From Blepharisma stoltei ATCC 30299 (lineage: Eukaryota; Protista; Ciliophora), in assembly GCA_965603825.1 (NCBI GenBank), contig CBFDEM010000061.1, positions 234,073-298,072 on the forward strand: DNA of 64,000 nucleotides, in the 5' to 3' direction. Position numbers and translations under genes: made by a program. Each line of letters begins with the position of its first letter. Within the stretch, counting starts at the first letter, position 1. The notes under the pieces were generated by a model. The model was not told the origin of the DNA and did not search any database. It saw nothing but the letters and a program-made list of their open reading frames with translations. Shown here piece after piece: positions 30,916 through 64,000 of the stretch.

Positions 30916-33900
30916 TTAACTAAGAACCACTTTACTTTCTTGTAATGGATGAATACTAAACTTATCATTTCTATACCGATGAATTTTATGTCTAATAATT
31001 TGATAAATTGTTCTCAAGAAAATACTAACAGAAGAAAAAAACTGTGCTCCCATAATTATCATGGAAATGAAAATAATTGCATTTTCTATGCCAGAAATTA
31101 TGCTTGAGCTTACTTCAAATAAATAAAAGGAAGTTGCACACATAATAACACCTATCATAATTTCGCTTATTAAATTGGATATCTGTAGAATTCTATCTTT
31201 AAATGGCCTATAAAAAATTAAATAAAAAATGCTCATCAAAGAACATATAATATTTATAAAGACTTGAGTCTTTGGGTATTCACACAAAAACACTAAATTG
31301 ACTGTGTACAAAAGTCTTCTTATAAAGAAAACAAAATAATAAAGAGAATATATAAAGCCTTTTTCAGTTTGAAATTCATAAAAAAATGAATCATAGAGCA
31401 GTGCGAAGTTTCTTTGATTTCTTTGGATTTTGTATCTATTTTTATAGGTAAAATAAAAAAAGGCAATAGGGGAAGCGATTAATAATGAAAATACACCGAA
31501 ACAAATAACAATATTTACTATTTGAATTGCATTATCACTTTTTAACTTCACTAGTCCTACAGCTGCTGCAGCACCAAGCTCAAGGTAGCATTGCAGTCAG
31601 AATCTTATATAAAACGAGTATTTTAAATTTTTGAATAAATTTTTAAACCTTTTGCCAACTAATCTATATGAGCAATCTGCTAAATATATTATAAATGGCA
31701 ATGATATCATTGAAGCTATAATGATTGAGAAATCATCGCCTTGATTTAATAAAATTTGATCTGTATTGTACCCATATTTAAGAGCTTGAGCATAAGCTTT
31801 ATTCCCATCTTTTTCATCTATTGCATGTTCAAAAAAATTAGGAAAAAGGTTATAAGAATTCAAATTTGACAAAAATTGGCTCATTTTGTCAGAAAAAGGA
31901 ATTCCAGATAATGATAAATAGCTAAGAATCTGTAAGCAGTTCATCAAGCCTCATAAAGAGCTTGGATTGGGGTTTAAAAATGATAAAGCTATACTCCCTA
32001 TCACAGCACTTTGCACAACTGCTGTAGCTTTTGAAGCAATTGCAGCTACTACTAAATTATCAGGGCTTGGATCATACTTATTGAGTTTTGAGCTGACTGT
32101 TGAAGAATTTAGAGTTTCATTTCCAATAGATCTTACTTGTGATAAATCAAAAAATGTGGCGTTTACTATCGCATCTTGCTTGATTTTATCTTTGATATTC
32201 ATTGGGATGCTATAATATGTCGTATTTATCTGCTCAAGTTCTCATGCGAAATCTGGATTATCTTCTATTGCTATTTTAATGATATTTGCTTTCAGAGAAT
32301 TTTGCAAAGGATCTGAAAAATTAAGAGATAAAGAATTATTTTTAAATACTAAAAGGGTTACAAAAAAAGTAGGGTCAGTGGAATTTGTAGTTTCATTATG
32401 AGCGCTGTTGTCACAGTCAGTATCACATATGCACGTATTGTTCATGAGAGAAGCATTTGATTTGCAAGTTATACATCCGTTTTCAGAATAATCGATGCAA
32501 GTCTCACATAAGGAACTATAGCAAACTGAGCAAGACTCTCGACTATCCTTGCATCCTTTGCATTTTGAGTTGCACTTCGAACATTGATCATATTCAGGTC
32601 CTTCCCAATATTCAAAGATTTTACAATTAGGTAAGCATGATCCTTTTACATGGCAAACATCACAGTTCTCCAAGCAAGATGTAGCCGCCAATAACTTAAT
32701 ATCATAATCTGTATTAAAGATTTTTATCTCATATAAAAATCCTTGAAAGAAGTTCCCTATATTTTGAGATATTTGTTGAGCTCCGATGAGTGTAGCTGCA
32801 TTTAAGTTAATGTCTTGAAAATATCCAAACCCAGCAGTGGATATAGGATCTGGATTTGTATTTATGTAACACATTACAACAGTATTCCCATTACCGTCAA
32901 GCTTTACTAAAAACGCTAAATGACTTCACTTATAAGAGTTGAGAGGAGCCTGGCATGCGATAGAAACAACTGAATCCTTAATCAGCAACTGAAGAGCAGG
33001 CTTTGAGCTGCTTAAAATGATAGCATAAATGGTTGAATAATTGTTAGAAATATCAGTTTTTGAAAACAGAGATGAATTTTCATTTTCAATATTTAACCAT
33101 ATAGAAATCATAAAAATTGGTCCAATATTTAGTTTTGGTGTTACATAAGTTTTATACTCAGGCAACCTCATAACTGAAGATTTTCCATCAAAATAAAAGC
33201 CTCTTAAATAAGCACTTATCGGATCATCGTCTTCATAATTTGGATAAAACTTATCTAATGACCCTGTAATTACTGGAATTGAATTTGCGCTATCATAAAT
33301 GATTCCGCTGATACTGCTTAAGCTTATGTCAAAAACGAGATCTTCCTTCAACAAGCATTCGTTTGTAGATTTCGTGTATCCTAAAGGGCAATCAGATAAA
33401 CAAACATTCGCTTTAGATAAATAATAATAACCCGATATGCATGATGTGCATTGATAATAAAGCAGCCCAGTGCAGTCTGAGCAGAATTTATAGCATGCTA
33501 AGCATTCAGCTTTGCCAGGCGTTTGAGTATACCCTTTATTGCATTCGCATGGGCTTCCTGATGCATTGGCTGCACACAATATGCAAGAGTTAGTTGAAAA
33601 TGATGAGCACTTTAGACATAAATCGTTTTCACAAAGACCACATGAATCTGCCCTTACACAACCATTTTTGCATGATACTAAGCATTTTTCACAGCTCGAT
33701 CCATCGAAATAGTGATCATAATCGCAGTTTCATAAGCAGTCTAAACTAGAACCTGGCTCACAATTAAAATAATTCATACCATCCATAAAGCTTGGAATAG
33801 TTTTCTGTCATAATTGAAAATAGCTTATGAATCCATAAAAGTCGGAAGACCCAAGATATAGCGATCCTCCCGAATGCGGTCTAAAAACGCAATCATCTAT

Positions 33901-50900: not shown

Positions 50901-52551
50901 ATGCTCCAGCTATGGGTCGAAAAATGCCTTCTTGAACTATATATGAATTTTCAGCAGAAGCATCTATATATGGAGTAATTGATGAAGATCCATCATCACG
51001 GTATTTTATTATATATGAAATATAATTCCAATTATTAAGAGATGGTGATGTTGAAGCGGAATACGCGGTATAATCACCCAAAAAATTTTGCATGCTAATT
51101 TCGATTGTTCCATCAGAATGCACTTTGAGATTTTCAGTATATGTTATATAATATCCACTGATGGGATAAATCCATGCTCCAATCGTGAATGTACGATAAA
51201 GATTTATTGTAGCTTTCAAATAAGAATTGGGAAGAAAATAAAGCCCTCTCTGCTTTGCAGGAAGTGGATCAATGCTTTCAGGGGAGTTTCAGTAGTTATA
51301 GGCAGATGAACTTTCTCCAGTAATCATAATATTATCGTAAATTCCTGCAAAGCTTTTAGTAAAATCAGCGTTAATAACAGGTGTATTTACCGGTGAATTA
51401 TTAATAAAACCATATGGTACAGCATACAAGCAAACTCCATCAATAAGAACTGTCCCTTCACTGCAGGAAGTACTATTGAATGTTGAAATACAAGTATTTG
51501 CAAGTCAATCACAACAATAAGGTAGCATTCCAGTTTTGCATCCTGTGCACATATTTTCAGCATATCCATAACACTCTGAACATTCCAATGAATAGCACCT
51601 AGAACAGTCGTCTTCGCCAGTCGAGCAAAGTCAATTTTGGCAGCCTGAATCATTATCACATTTCATACATTGGCCAAAATAGTTTAGAATGCTGCATAGA
51701 TTTGTTGTATCCAATATTCAATAATTTGAGTTCAAGCTATTTGTTGCTTCAATTCAATATAAAAATCCAAAAAAAGAATCTGAATCTGACTTTCCAATTG
51801 TCCACGTATAAGCCCCGTCAGCAAAATTTGCTATTGTACTGCCCCATTTTGAAGTTCACCTATCAATATTATTTCTAGATACCGTTATATTTACTACATC
51901 ACAATCTATTTGATTAATTTGGATTGATATATATTGCCAATTGCTATCAATGATATCACTGCTTACGCTTATTTGATTTTCAATGTTGATTGCACTTTTT
52001 GCTAAAATTTTAAAAGTAAAAATATCTGAATTATATATTAGTTCTATGTAATTTTTTGAGTCTAAATTTGCAGTCAATATCTGTCCAGTCGAAATAGGTA
52101 AAATTCATGCATTTGATGTAAAATAGAGTGCTGGAATGTAGTTCTGATTGCTAGTCATAGATGAAGTTGAGCTAAAATAAAACCCACGATTTCTTGTTGG
52201 AAATGGTGACGTTTTGGTGTCTAAGCTGTAAGGAGTTCCTAATGGATTAGCCCATTTATCAGTTGGATCGATCTTATTCGCTATATAAGTTGCTGATAGA
52301 TCCTCTATTTTTCAAAATTCAAGCTCGAATAATGCAGGGGAAGTTGGCATCGAACATCCTGTACATGAATCTTCTTGAACTGAGTCGCATACTTTTCTAA
52401 AGTGAGTTGGACAAACATTGGCACAAATTTTATTATCAATCAGCAAAGTATTAATCATATCATTGCATGCACCAGTATCCGTAAACGACTGGCACTGTGA
52501 AAAAGCTAGCAATATATTGGAGAAAAATAACAAAAGGAATTGCAATTTCAT
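47977..52551 (-). CDS. G7: ~1524-aa paralog, 3 modules plus ~9-TM domain
   Basis: Eight co-framed ORFs with TGA breaks and TAA at 47977-47979. Signal peptide MKLQFLLLFFSNILLAFSQC. Module motifs at ~52180, 51240 and 50240. Confidence 0.9.
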
Positions 52552-52651
52552 CTTTAAATTCTTAAATAATTATATTTCACTATCAAGAATATAAAAAGCT
52601 TAATAAGCAAGCATGTGTATTTATTTTGTTATAAAAATTTAGTAAATATAC

Positions 52652-55600
52652 TTAAATCGTTTCTGAAAACTCTTCAATAGGGTGAACTTTTAATTTAGAA
52701 TTTCCATATGGATTTAATTTACCACCAAAAAGTTGATAAATAGTTCTTGCAAAAATCGAGATTGAAGTGCAAAACTGTACCCCTATTACCATTATAGATG
52801 TGAAAATTATAAAGTTTTCCATATCTGATATCATGCTTGAGCTTAAATCAAATAAATAAAAAGAAGTTGCACACATAATTATTGAGATCATAATTTCACT
52901 AGCTAAATTCGAAATCTGAATAATTTTATCTTTATAAGGCCAATACGCAATTAAATAAAATATACTGATCAAGGAGCATATAATATTTATTGAAACTTGC
53001 GTCCTTGGGTAATCACTCAGGAACACCAAATTAGTCGAGTATATAAGTCTCCTCAAGAAGTAAACAAAATAGTAAAGAGAATAGAGAAATCCTTTTTCAG
53101 TCCGAAATTCATAAAAAAAGGAGTCAAATAGTGAAAAGAATGTTTTAGACTTTGATTGAATTTTTACTCGATTTCTATAAGAAAACCAAAAAAATGCAAA
53201 AGGGGAAGCTGTATATAATGAAATAATCCCAAAGCAAATAATAATATTTGTTATTTGAGTAAAATTTTGGATTTTGAACATTTTTAGCCCTACATATGCA
53301 GCAGTTCCAAGCTCAAGGAAGCATTGTATCCAGAATCTTATATAGAAAGCATATTTATAATTTTGGTACATTTTTTGAAATTTTTTTCCAACCATTCTGT
53401 AAGAACAATTAGCTAAATATAATACTAATGGAATAAAAAGTACTGAGGCAGCTGCTATAGAAAAATCATCACCTTGGTTTAATAAGATTAAATCAGTATT
53501 GTATCCAAAATTTATAGCATTATCATAAGCTTTGCTTCCCTCTTTTTCATTTATTAAATATTCAAAAACATTTGGAAAAAGGCTAAATGAATTTAAATTT
53601 GATAAGAATTTATTCATTTTTTCTGAAAAAGGAATTCCTGATAATGATAAATAACTGAGAATTTGTAAGCAGCTTAAAAAGCTTCATAGTGAGCTTGGAT
53701 TTGGATTTACAAATGATGCAGCTATAGATCCAATAACTGCACCTTGCACAGCTGAAGATATTTGTGAAGTAATTTCAGTCATAGCTAAGCTATAAGAAGC
53801 TGGGTCATATTTATTAAGCCTAGAGCTAATTGTTGAGGAGCTCAAAATCCCATTATAAATTGACTTTACTTTTGTCAAATCAAAAAATGTGATATTTATT
53901 ATTGTATATTCTTCTATTTTTTCATTAAATATTGTTTGAATACTGTAGTAGGTTGTATTTACCAGTTCAAGGCTTCAGCTAAATTTTGGATCATTCTCAA
54001 TAGAAATTTTAAAACTGTCATTTGAAAGTGCATATTGCAAAGGATCTGAGAAATCAAGAGATAAAGAATCATTAGAAAAAATTAAGAGATCGACAGAAAA
54101 TGGGACATATTTGCACGCTGTGGTTCCATTGTAGCCACTATTACACGCACAAGAATTATTTTGAACTGAAGCATTTGGTTTGCATGCTTTACATCCATTT
54201 GATGAACTATTGCAAGTATCACATAAAAGATCTGTGCAAAAAGAACAAGAATTACCTAATCGATTTTCAACACACAAAAAGCAAGATTTAGAGTCAAATG
54301 ATGAGCATTTCAAGCAGAGCTCGCTATCACAAATATTGCATGAGTCTGCTCTCACGCAGCCATTTTGGCATGAATCTAAACATTTTTTGAAAGAACTTCC
54401 ATCATAGAAGGAATTAAAATCACAACTTCACAAATCCAATGCTCCTGCATTATTATTGAAATAACCTCGATAAGACTGAAAACTTGAAATAGCGATTTGT
54501 CACAACTGAAAAAGACTTATAAATCCATTAAAATCAGCTGATCCAAGATAAAGAGATCCGCCTGCTTCAGGTCTGAAAATCCCTTCTTGCACAAAATATG
54601 GATTTGTAATGTCAGTTTCTATATATGGAGATATTGATGAAGTTCCATTAAAACGGTATTCAATTGAATAGGAAATATAGTTTCATTTTTGAAGATTTGA
54701 CGATATTGAAGTGGAATACGTTTTGCTACTTCCAGCAAAATTTGGCATGCAGATCTCAATTGTCCCGTTAGAATGCACTTTCAGCTGATTCCCAGTATAT
54801 GTTATATAATATCCACTGATGGGATAAACCCATGCTCCAATCGTGAATGTATGATAAAGATTTATTGTAGCTTTCAAATAAGAATTGGGGATAAAATAAA
54901 GCCCTCTCTGTTTTGCAGGTAATGGATCAATGCTTTCAGGGGAGTTTCAGTAGTTATAGGTAGATGAACTTTCTCCAGTAACCAATATGCTATCGTAAAT
55001 TCCTGCAAAGCTATTAGTAAAATCAGCATTAATAACAGGAGTATTTACTGGCAAATTATTAACAAAGCCATATGGGATTGCATACAAGCAAACTTCATTA
55101 ATGAGAACTGTACCTATACTGCAGGTAATACTATTAAAAGTTGAAGAGCAAGAACTTGCTAATCAGTCACAACAAGATGGCTCCTTTCCACTTGTACATT
55201 TTGAGCACATATTTTGAGAGTATCCATAACACTTTGGGCATTGGTCTGAGTAGCACTTAGTGCAGTCATCCTCGCCAGGCATGCATAGTGAGGATGGAGG
55301 ATCGCAGTGTCCTGATTCATCACATACTATACAATTGTTATCATAAAGTATATGAATAATTAAATTAAGTTCTATATCATCGACTTTAATTCTTAATAGG
55401 CTAAAACCTTTCCCCACACAAATTAATGCACTTATATTTTATTTTACTCTTCACTCATCAAAATTATTGCAAGGTAGTCTAATATTGCATAATTGTGAAA
55501 AATCTGGGGATCAATGATAGTGATATAAAACATTTCATCCTTTAATTCAATATAAAAATCCATTGAAAGAAGTTTCATCTGATTTTCCGATTGTCCAATT

Positions 55601-56341
55601 ATATACTTTATTCGGAAACCTTGCTTCATAGCCATGCTCAAAAAGGTTTGGAATACTACCCGGATCTTCATTTATTGCAATAACCAATTTAATTGTATCA
55701 GAATCTATTTGATTAATTTGAATTAACACATATTGCCAAACACTATCAGCTATAGAGGTAATTTTTGGCATATCGCTATCACGATGTGGCGTTTTTGCCA
55801 GTATATTGAAAGCAAAGTAGTGATCATCAAGCACTAATTCTATATAGTTTGTTGATTCAGCCCTTACAGTCAAAATCTTTCCAGGGGTTATTGCTGTAAT
55901 CCATAGAGCTGCTGTGAAATAAAGAGATGGGATATAGGGTTGGTTGCTGGCGATTGATGAACTTGAAGTAAAATAAAATCCACGGCTCCTAGTAGGTAAT
56001 GGAGATGTATTCGTTGGAGAATTGTAAGGAACTAAAAATGGATTTTCTCAATTATCAGCAGAGTTGATTGAGCTCGTTATAGAAGTTTGAGATAGATTTT
56101 GGATCATCCAAAATTTAAGCTCAAATAGCTCAGCATTGGAGCTCGGTAAATTGCACAATTGTCCTTTATCTCGGTCTACATCTTGGATAAATTGTGAAGG
56201 ACATACTTCGCCACAAATTTTATCATCAATTCAGTAATCATTAGTCCCATCATTGCACATTACATCGGCACCTACCCCTGAATATAGCACAAAAGTCAAC
56301 AATATATTGTTGACAAAAAACAAAAAGTTAAGAAAATCCAT
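52652..56341 (-). CDS. G8: 2-module paralog plus ~9-TM domain (~1185 aa if the 132-bp insertion at 55352-55483 is removed; otherwise truncated by an in-frame TAA at 55439-55441)
   Basis: ATG 56341 (MDFLNFLFFVNNILLTFV, missed by the track because of an early TGA) is in frame with ORFs 55547-55873, 55163-55417, 54683-54877, 53975-54355, 53684-53878 and 52652-53617. The one non-TGA stop found lies inside the insertion. Confidence 0.82.
55351..55484. mobile_element. Candidate retained internal eliminated sequence (IES), 132 bp, TA-bounded within an ATAT direct repeat
   Basis: ATAT at 55350-55353 and at 55482-55485. Excision gives TGC AAT ATA CTT TAT GAT = LCNILYDNNC, matching G7 LCSILNYFGQC. The insert is AT-rich, has no counterpart in the paralogs and contains an in-frame TAA. 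Confidence 0.7.
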
Positions 56342-57132
56342 TATAAACTCTTAAAAAATTAATTAAACTTTAGCTGTTTGCATTTAACGCAGGAATAAGG
56401 ATAATTTATTAATTATTTGGAAGGTTAAGCTTGCTAATAAAAGATAGTTAATTAATAATCAGACTGGCAATATTGGATAAATCAATATTATATTTTTTCA
56501 ACTCAGAAATTTTTTTACTGATTCCTTCTAAAACAAAATTGAATTACCGATTTCATGAGATCAAATTGTTTTACTTATATATTTAATTTAATTTTTACAA
56601 CAAATATGTGCACAAAAGAAATCGAGCAAATACGATTTTTCATGAAGGAGACACCTAAATTTAGATCTTAAAATCTGAACATGTAATTTATGCAGTATAA
56701 ATTTTATAAGAAAAGTCCGGCTTACCAGGAGTAATATCAATTAAATTATATATGTCATATAAGATATGGAATGCCAATAAAATAATAAGATAAGAAGTGG
56801 AAAATTTAGCTCAAAAGCAAAAACAAAATCTAAAACCAAAAACCAAAAGAAATGACTTTAAACTGTAAATTAATACACTTACACCATCCCTATTTTTTAC
56901 CTACATAAAAAGTTAATTTTTTCATAGCAGCTTATAGATAGATGGGATCATAAAGATGGTATGTAATAAAAAAGAGAAAAAGCAACAGAAAAGCCTTATT
57001 CTAAAGCAACGTTAAAAAGGCTATTATAAGGAACAAAGAATTTAAATTAGCACAAAGCTTTACTTAATTTCCCAAATATGAAAATAATTTTATTTACTAG
57101 CTAACTTTTTGCCTGCGCTTCATTGCTACAAA

Positions 57133-63209: not shown

Positions 63210-64000
63210 TTAGGGTGTTAGGGTGTTAGGGTGTTAGGGTGTTAGGGTGTTAGGGTGTTAGGGTGTTAGGGTGTTAGGGTGTTAGGGTGTTAGGGTGTTA
63301 GGGTGTTAGGGTGTTAGGGTGTTAGGGTGTTAGGGTGTTAGGGTGTTAGGGTGTTAGGGTGTTAGGGTGTTAGGGTGTTAGGGTGTTAGGGTGTTAGGGT
63401 GTTAGGGTGTTAGGGTGTTAGGGTGTTAGGGTGTTAGGGTGTTAGGGTGTTAGGGTGTTAGGGTGTTAGGGTGTTAGGGTGTTAGGGTGTTAGGGTGTTA
63501 GGGTGTTAGGGTGTTAGGGTGTTAGGGTGTTAGGGTGTTAGGGTGTTAGGGTGTTAGGGTGTTAGGGTGTTAGGGTGTTAGGGTGTTAGGGTGTTAGGGT
63601 GTTAGGGTGTTAGGGTGTTAGGGTGTTAGGGTGTTAGGGTGTTAGGGTGTTAGGGTGTTAGGGTGTTAGGGTGTTAGGGTGTTAGGGTGTTAGGGTGTTA
63701 GGGTGTTAGGGTGTTAGGGTGTTAGGGTGTTAGGGTGTTAGGGTGTTAGGGTGTTAGGGTGTTAGGGTGTTAGGGTGTTAGGGTGTTAGGGTGTTAGGGT
63801 GTTAGGGTGTTAGGGTGTTAGGGTGTTAGGGTGTTAGGGTGTTAGGGTGTTAGGGTGTTAGGGTGTTAGGGTGTTAGGGTGTTAGGGTGTTAGGGTGTTA
63901 GGGTGTTAGGGTGTTAGGGTGTTAGGGTGTTAGGGTGTTAGGGTGTTAGGGTGTTAGGGTGTTAGGGTGTTAGGGTGTTAGGGTGTTAGGGTGTTAGGGT
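63210..64000 (+). repeat. Telomere, (TTAGGGTG)n / (CCCTAACA)n, ~99 units, heterotrich-ciliate type
   Basis: Perfect 8-mer tandem repeat to the window end, with the G-rich strand running 5'->3' toward the terminus. CCCTAACA is the unit known from Blepharisma and Stentor. Confidence 0.98.

Follow-up and report, generated by a model that had tools for sequence, protein, structure and literature searches.

A TA-bounded 129-bp insertion that splits a LamG-array receptor gene in the soma of Blepharisma stoltei ATCC 30299 may be a degenerate, retained IES

In the somatic genome of Blepharisma stoltei ATCC 30299, one member of a family of surface-receptor genes is annotated as two separate genes, which raises the question whether the piece of DNA between the halves is an IES left behind in the chromosome and whether its retention has any function. 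The window analyzed here, a stretch of 64,000 nucleotides, is the telomeric end of contig C61 (assembly of 41.46 Mb in 64 contigs); an 8-bp telomeric repeat starts at about position 63210 (tract 63210-64000), and the gene array reaches to about 200 bp from the telomere. The minus strand carries nine related giant genes, and long open reading frames are obtained in the window only if TGA is read as Trp. The interrupted copy, the shortest of the nine, runs from 56341 to 52652 on the minus strand in this code, and NCBI annotates its halves as two genes of 300 and 876 amino acids. The gene consists of the following parts:

56270-56341, minus strand: putative signal peptide, about residues 1-24, predicted by a hydropathy scan
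55487-56269, minus strand: tip domain, about residues 25-285, with a predicted jelly-roll fold of the LamG/ConA-like type
55439-56341, minus strand: 5' ORF P0001 of 300 amino acids, with a hydrophobic N-terminus, one LamG/ConA-type beta-sandwich and 14 insert-encoded residues, without a transmembrane segment
52652-55350, minus strand: remainder of the gene with intact frame, comprising a Cys-rich linker, further LamG-like modules and a multi-pass membrane domain; annotated as 876 amino acids from an ATG at 55282
52754-53470, minus strand: multi-pass membrane region with at least five strong hydrophobic helices, weakly TRP/Flc-Pkd2-like

The first-pass annotation of this DNA had described the separating piece as a 132-bp segment between ATAT direct repeats with both ends reading TAT inward. 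An extra stretch of roughly 130 bp that contains an in-frame TAA and splits a single minus-strand gene into pieces of 300 and 876 residues was confirmed; its boundaries had to be revised. A DNA contig of run X10, which originates from the same study as the source of the window and is probably strain HT-IV (alleles approximately 3% diverged), lacks a 129-bp segment (55351-55479) and joins 55350 directly to 55480, with two letters (TA) that fit either side. This contig is 2507 nt long and takes in the upstream intergenic region, its remaining indels total multiples of three, and no X10 contig was found over the insert. The revised features are:

55351-55479, no strand: insert, starting with TA, single copy in the somatic genome (contig C61 289423-289551)
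55480-55481, no strand: second copy of the TA terminal direct repeat, the first copy being 55351-55352
55439-55441, minus strand: in-frame TAA within the insert, which terminates the 300-residue ORF

The register of the paralogs matters as a second line of evidence for these boundaries, given a divergence of 15% between the strains immediately to the right of the junction. Removal of 129 bp produces C-N-I-I-L-Y-D-N-N-C, with an aromatic residue at +5 from the first linker Cys as in 23 of 23 scored paralogs, and only this removal recovers their Cys-x4-aromatic register; it also opens a frame of 1186 codons with one TA remaining, a form that is identically present in the DNA of the second strain. 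Removal of 132 bp leaves a one-residue gap relative to the paralogs. About 60 frame-restoring removals flanked by direct repeats of at least 2 bp are possible in this AT-rich stretch, the ATAT-flanked 132 bp being one of them, so that the ATAT repeat alone is no evidence for the ends. The X10 joint and the paralog register rule out the 132-bp boundaries and leave a plain TA repeat, of whose two inward ends only one reads TAT (TATGAATAAT versus TAGACTACCT). By our own estimate, the chance of finding a TA repeat at a junction that was fixed independently is approximately 1-3% (TA frequencies of 0.09 and 0.13). The previously noted excess in module spacing was reproduced: the distance from the module 1 to the module 2 motif is 1077 nt in the interrupted gene, compared with 936-960 nt in the eight other genes of the window and 891-978 nt in 27 further sampled copies, and subtraction of 129 gives 948, the figure reported before. 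Since the paralogs do not contain the segment, it represents an insertion state in ATCC 30299 and not a deletion in the other strain.

Within ATCC 30299, the insert is present in the MAC assembly, in DNA runs and in RNA contigs, and because it is still found in the soma of the strain, it is not a conventional working IES there. Four DNA runs from two studies contain 0.97-0.98 of the sampled words, too much for the insert to be missing, as its loss would cost approximately 4.5%. The germline MAC+IES assembly matches the window without a difference over 51356-56903, insert included, but it was built on the MAC scaffold and is therefore not independent. Likewise, the absence of the insert from the called IESs is expected for anything fully retained, because the caller seeks insertions against this same MAC. 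A contig of run X6, which is probably a MIC-rich gradient fraction, crosses the right junction unbroken with 0 differences from the window. No excised joint was seen in the somatic and germline assemblies, the DNA runs or the RNA of ATCC 30299, in which contigs may have dropped rare variants, and these contig data contain no molecule showing excision from a germline known to carry the piece. Two putative uncalled germline insertions were observed in X6, one as a contig break with a 10-bp overlap at 55335-55344, 6 bp from the left end of the insert, and one as a 14-bp direct repeat at 55623-55636 around approximately 817 extra letters. Both are absent from the published MAC+IES assembly and are possibly uncalled IESs with long repeats or LINE-type inserts.

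With slightly better than even confidence, we interpret the insert as an old, degenerate, TA-bounded IES that is no longer excised in the soma of ATCC 30299 and that knocks out one redundant receptor. The first-pass proposal of an IES-like piece retained in the somatic chromosome gains from the TA repeat, which lies exactly at the junction fixed by the other strain and the paralogs, from a GC content of 26% and from the precise, in-frame empty allele. The flanking coding DNA has 34% GC, and the value of the insert lies within the range of 32 called local IESs (median approximately 25-30%; IESs taken from the germline MAC+IES record by comparison with the somatic loci). Of its inward ends, TATGAATAAT matches the weak consensus of periodic Blepharisma IESs, TAT rrn ttt t (bioRxiv 10.1101/2022.05.02.489906), at 8 of 10 positions and TAGACTACCT at 5 of 10; the ends of real local IESs match at 3-9 positions and thus bracket both values. 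Against the IES reading stand the poor match of the second end and the length of 129 bp, which falls into the non-periodic length range and off the known IES peaks (65-115 periodic, then 153, 174, 228 and 389; PMC9942856). No terminal inverted repeat was detected in the insert (p=0.27), no second copy was found in the somatic genome, and there was no match among the 32 local IESs and approximately 120 kb of germline assembly. Being single-copy and lacking a TIR, the insert looks decayed and not freshly transposed. Two other identities were considered and rejected: a MITE/MITIES (e.g. BogoMITE) or repeat family by the missing TIR and the lack of copies in the soma and among the 32 local IESs, and a heterotrich tiny intron by the size of 129 nt without GT-AG ends and the presence of the piece in RNA.

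The downstream coding part points to recent loss. Compared with X10, 31 codons differ in this part, 15 synonymously and 16 non-synonymously, where 74% non-synonymous changes would be expected under neutrality (P=0.005); the window's own branch carries 4 synonymous and 5 non-synonymous changes, counted over 9 sites among the listed differences and polarized crudely with a distant outgroup. This purifying signal implies that the full-length gene worked in this lineage until recently, and the old appearance of an insert in a gene that functioned so recently is consistent with former excision of the piece. Divergence between the strains reaches 15% of the DNA in 55480-55754, which is part of the tip domain, in contrast to 2.5-3% in the rest of the gene, and it is possible that this excess reflects gene conversion or diversifying selection at the tip, where ligands presumably bind. 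Across 55480-55823, the tips of the two strains are also distinguished by several frame-compensating indels and a replaced block of 68/71 nt. Length-limited protein searches did not recover the protein of the second strain and returned only P0001 itself or nothing.

If the insert is a former IES, PiggyMac-type machinery would normally excise it from between the TAs, with a single TA staying behind, the form found in the somatic DNA of the second strain. In ATCC 30299, excision would have failed in all or most somatic copies and the strain would have been propagated in this state. The failure may have been a developmental accident that was kept by maternal small-RNA subtraction, a process known from Paramecium (PMC6771405), or it may have been caused by the poorly matching end; alternatively, the neighbouring germline insertion hinted at by X6 might have interfered with excision. 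In consequence, one redundant member of the array would be lost as a membrane protein, and the short transcript might give rise to a secreted lectin-fold domain as a by-product. We infer the IES ancestry, the cause of retention and the polyadenylation within the insert.

A less probable explanation that nevertheless deserves consideration is a recent, strain-specific germline insertion at a TA, left over from a TA-targeting element or consisting of captured DNA and never recognized as an IES; the interrupted gene would then be a young pseudogene fixed in a homozygous laboratory strain, and the X10 form would be the ancestral empty allele. Presence/absence polymorphism is to be expected between alleles that differ by 2.5-3% (6-15% near the tip), and the lack of an excised form in the contigs of ATCC 30299, a nearly homozygous strain that has been cultured for more than 50 years (PMC9942806), is in line with an insertion that is never removed. 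The intact frame and the purifying signal downstream also suit a young insertion. However, a young mobile element should have kept TIRs or relatives, and neither was found in the soma, the 32 local IESs and the approximately 120 kb of germline assembly.

Contigs from two RNA libraries indicate what is transcribed from the interrupted gene. They are identical to the window allele, with coverage of 73-83% upstream of the insert and, at lower depth, 12-20% downstream; four RNA runs contain 0.21-0.27 of the sampled words, consistent with this partial coverage. The contig nearest to the insert is:

55452-56197, minus strand: RNA contig of the window allele with 0 differences, in two libraries; the runs are taken as RNA by guess, and contigs cannot prove end or strand

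In both libraries the contig extends 28 nt into the insert and ends at 55452, 11 nt short of the TAA, and neither run has a contig over 55133-55451. The simplest reading is that the transcript ends inside the A-rich insert and that read-through RNA is rare or degraded. The last letter of the contigs is the G of an in-frame TGA (55453-55451), which is followed by A-rich sequence with the TAA further on; addition of poly(A) at this point would give a UGA-poly(A) mRNA, the setting in which other heterotrichs show context-dependent termination. Blepharisma is reported to read UGA as Trp, with possible weak competition by eRF1 (10.1101/2023.10.09.561518).

A product of about 300 residues without a transmembrane segment, as proposed in the first-pass annotation, is plausible, since RNA covers this part of the gene and ends in the insert and the domain is predicted to fold; its secretion is likewise predicted. 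For residues 25-290, AF2 with a 57-sequence alignment gave a nearly all-beta model with a pLDDT of 91, compared with 36 for the single-sequence model. Foldseek matched the model to LamG-type domains with a probability of 1.0, TM scores of 0.35-0.5 and about 10% identity, the top matches being LamG-type domains of clostridial toxin complexes, CELSR1, NEL and lyases. Many of the matches are lectin-fold parts of clostridial toxin complexes; the likeness is one of fold only, with no sign of a toxin. Pfam searches gave no match on P0001 and little on the pieces between TGA codons. Judged from these models, a secreted, foldable tip domain produced from the short transcript is plausible.

Such a product raises the question whether the insert acts as a functional switch, in which variable or maternally inherited excision would yield a membrane receptor or a secreted tip, depending on the clone or mating type. 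The insert lies directly behind a complete, foldable domain with a putative signal peptide, a short RNA is made, the tip is unusually diverged between the alleles, and the two strains, which are of complementary mating types (PMC9942806), differ in insert state. A precedent exists in P. sexaurelia, where mtA loses transmembrane helices via alternative excision (PMC7900874). Nevertheless, we consider a switch unlikely. The contigs of ATCC 30299 show a single state, retained, and the idea that variable excision generates clonal on/off or soluble/membrane variants found no excised molecule in the data from this strain, the only difference being that between strains whose alleles are about 3% apart. 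A stop between the first two modules occurs in one of 30 sampled tip loci, the present gene, besides one telomere-cut locus, and the arrangement is therefore not a family-wide design. In addition, the only other copy found with a TA insert is a decayed pseudogene, and Blepharisma mating types rest on gamones (PMC9942806), which have no known link to this gene. Still somewhat less probable is the specific version in which IES retention is a maternally inherited state that turns a LamG-array receptor into a secreted lectin-fold protein, the insert supplying both the stop and the polyadenylation site, and clones or strains differ in having the soluble or the membrane form.

Rescue at the RNA level, by removal of tiny introns inside the insert (a 24-nt GT-AG intron at 55454-55431, or a pair of 17+16 or 17+19 nt) to give a full receptor with a short extra loop, is very improbable. 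On paper, any of these removals would reopen the frame, and an A is present at -6 or -7 in the candidates of 16 and 17 nt, but neither RNA run contains a spliced or excised joint, no RNA contig lies over 55133-55451, and the RNA contigs end at 55452 and not at a donor (55455 or 55448). Moreover, Blepharisma introns are mostly 15-16 nt long (PMC9942806), and the annotation based on spliced reads calls none here. An assembly artefact, in which an ordinary IES was drawn into the somatic assembly from contaminating micronuclear reads, would agree with the IES-like ends and with low-level MIC DNA in MAC libraries but is hardly credible, as RNA enters the insert for 28 nt in two libraries, the neighbouring IESs are all missing from the window and run X6 of the same strain has no empty junction.

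The interrupted gene belongs to a family of about 30 related LamG/Cys-rich/TRP-like surface-receptor genes, for which a literature search returned nothing relevant. Paralogs match PF13385 (Laminin_G_3) and, weakly, PF06011 (E=0.057 in the neighbour P0002); 89 relatives were found among cluster representatives, and the Atlas cluster has 11% PF06011 with a score of 0.95. Other members of the family are unusual as well. The copy on contig C50 (gene of P0050, L039:10496-10610) carries a 115-bp insert of 25% GC between TATATAA direct repeats in an annotated somatic CDS; it has further lesions downstream and, as a multi-lesion pseudogene, fits decay better than a switch. P0086 (L037:10001-10717, at about 191 kb of C61) has a 1-nt frameshift near a T run and is either a pseudogene or an assembly error, and P0007 (L038:10001-12815) encodes 798 amino acids with a signal peptide but without a transmembrane segment. 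The broken members are what one sees in a birth-and-death array, whose redundant copies can carry lesions, among them IES-like DNA that was not excised. Most of the IESs called in the array are TA/TAA-bounded and AT-rich; those at 32545, 38589, 42811, 50090 and 60704 differ in their direct repeats, which are long (7-13 bp) and non-TA or mixed, and in their higher GC content of 0.31-0.48. The IES-free 5.5 kb around the interrupted gene is not a special feature, as gaps of 4.6 and 5.2 kb occur nearby.

In comparison with known systems, the insert resembles the TA-bound IESs of Blepharisma (Seah et al. 2023, PMC9942856) in its intragenic position, TA repeat, AT-richness, one consensus-like end and precise removal that leaves one TA and an open frame. 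It differs from them in staying in the soma, whereas called IESs have a retention of at most 0.02 in this MAC and fully retained ones are invisible to that method; it was not called, is off the length peaks, lacks a TIR and has an empty form known from another strain only. With the retained IESs of Paramecium tetraurelia (Vitali et al. 2019, PMC6771405) it shares MAC retention, a premature stop, IES-containing transcripts, weak ends, for which somatic retention in Paramecium is enriched, possible inheritance and a proposed route to paralog loss; those cases are mostly partial (0.1-0.3) and within one strain, while retention of the present insert is apparently near-complete and was seen only as a difference between strains. 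As in Paramecium mtA/mtB (PMC7900874), the production of an intact transmembrane surface protein depends on a TA-bounded segment. However, the sequence excised in mtA/mtB is functional, clones of a single genotype occur in either state, and inheritance and phenotype have been shown, whereas the Blepharisma insert inactivates by retention and has no known clonal variation or phenotype. The cryptic IESs of the Blepharisma MAC (PMC9942856, supplement) are likewise TA-bounded MAC sequences that are mostly retained (median 95%), but they belong to the genuine somatic sequence and are lost by error, whereas the present insert does not belong to the gene, which is repaired by its loss. Relative to the LamG/ConA-array, Cys-rich, TRP(Flc/Pkd2)-like membrane proteins of ciliates, the gene has the same architecture, with this copy interrupted and the shortest in the window. 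The retained degenerate IES that we favour would represent a kind of genome-editing failure that is already known, and a functional switch is unsupported by the data.

Callers that set the germline reads of a strain against its own soma miss fully retained IESs, which go uncounted in Blepharisma and surface instead as split gene models, here as two annotated genes. With its exact boundaries, an empty allele in a strain of complementary mating type and SNPs that mark the alleles, the locus offers a ready marker for the maternal inheritance of IES retention, which occurs in Paramecium, in heterotrichs. Should the short product be secreted and its state be switchable, this would constitute a new way to diversify the receptor array, and a maternally inherited retention that decides between soluble and membrane forms would, if true, be the first case in a heterotrich ciliate of alternative IES excision being put to functional use.
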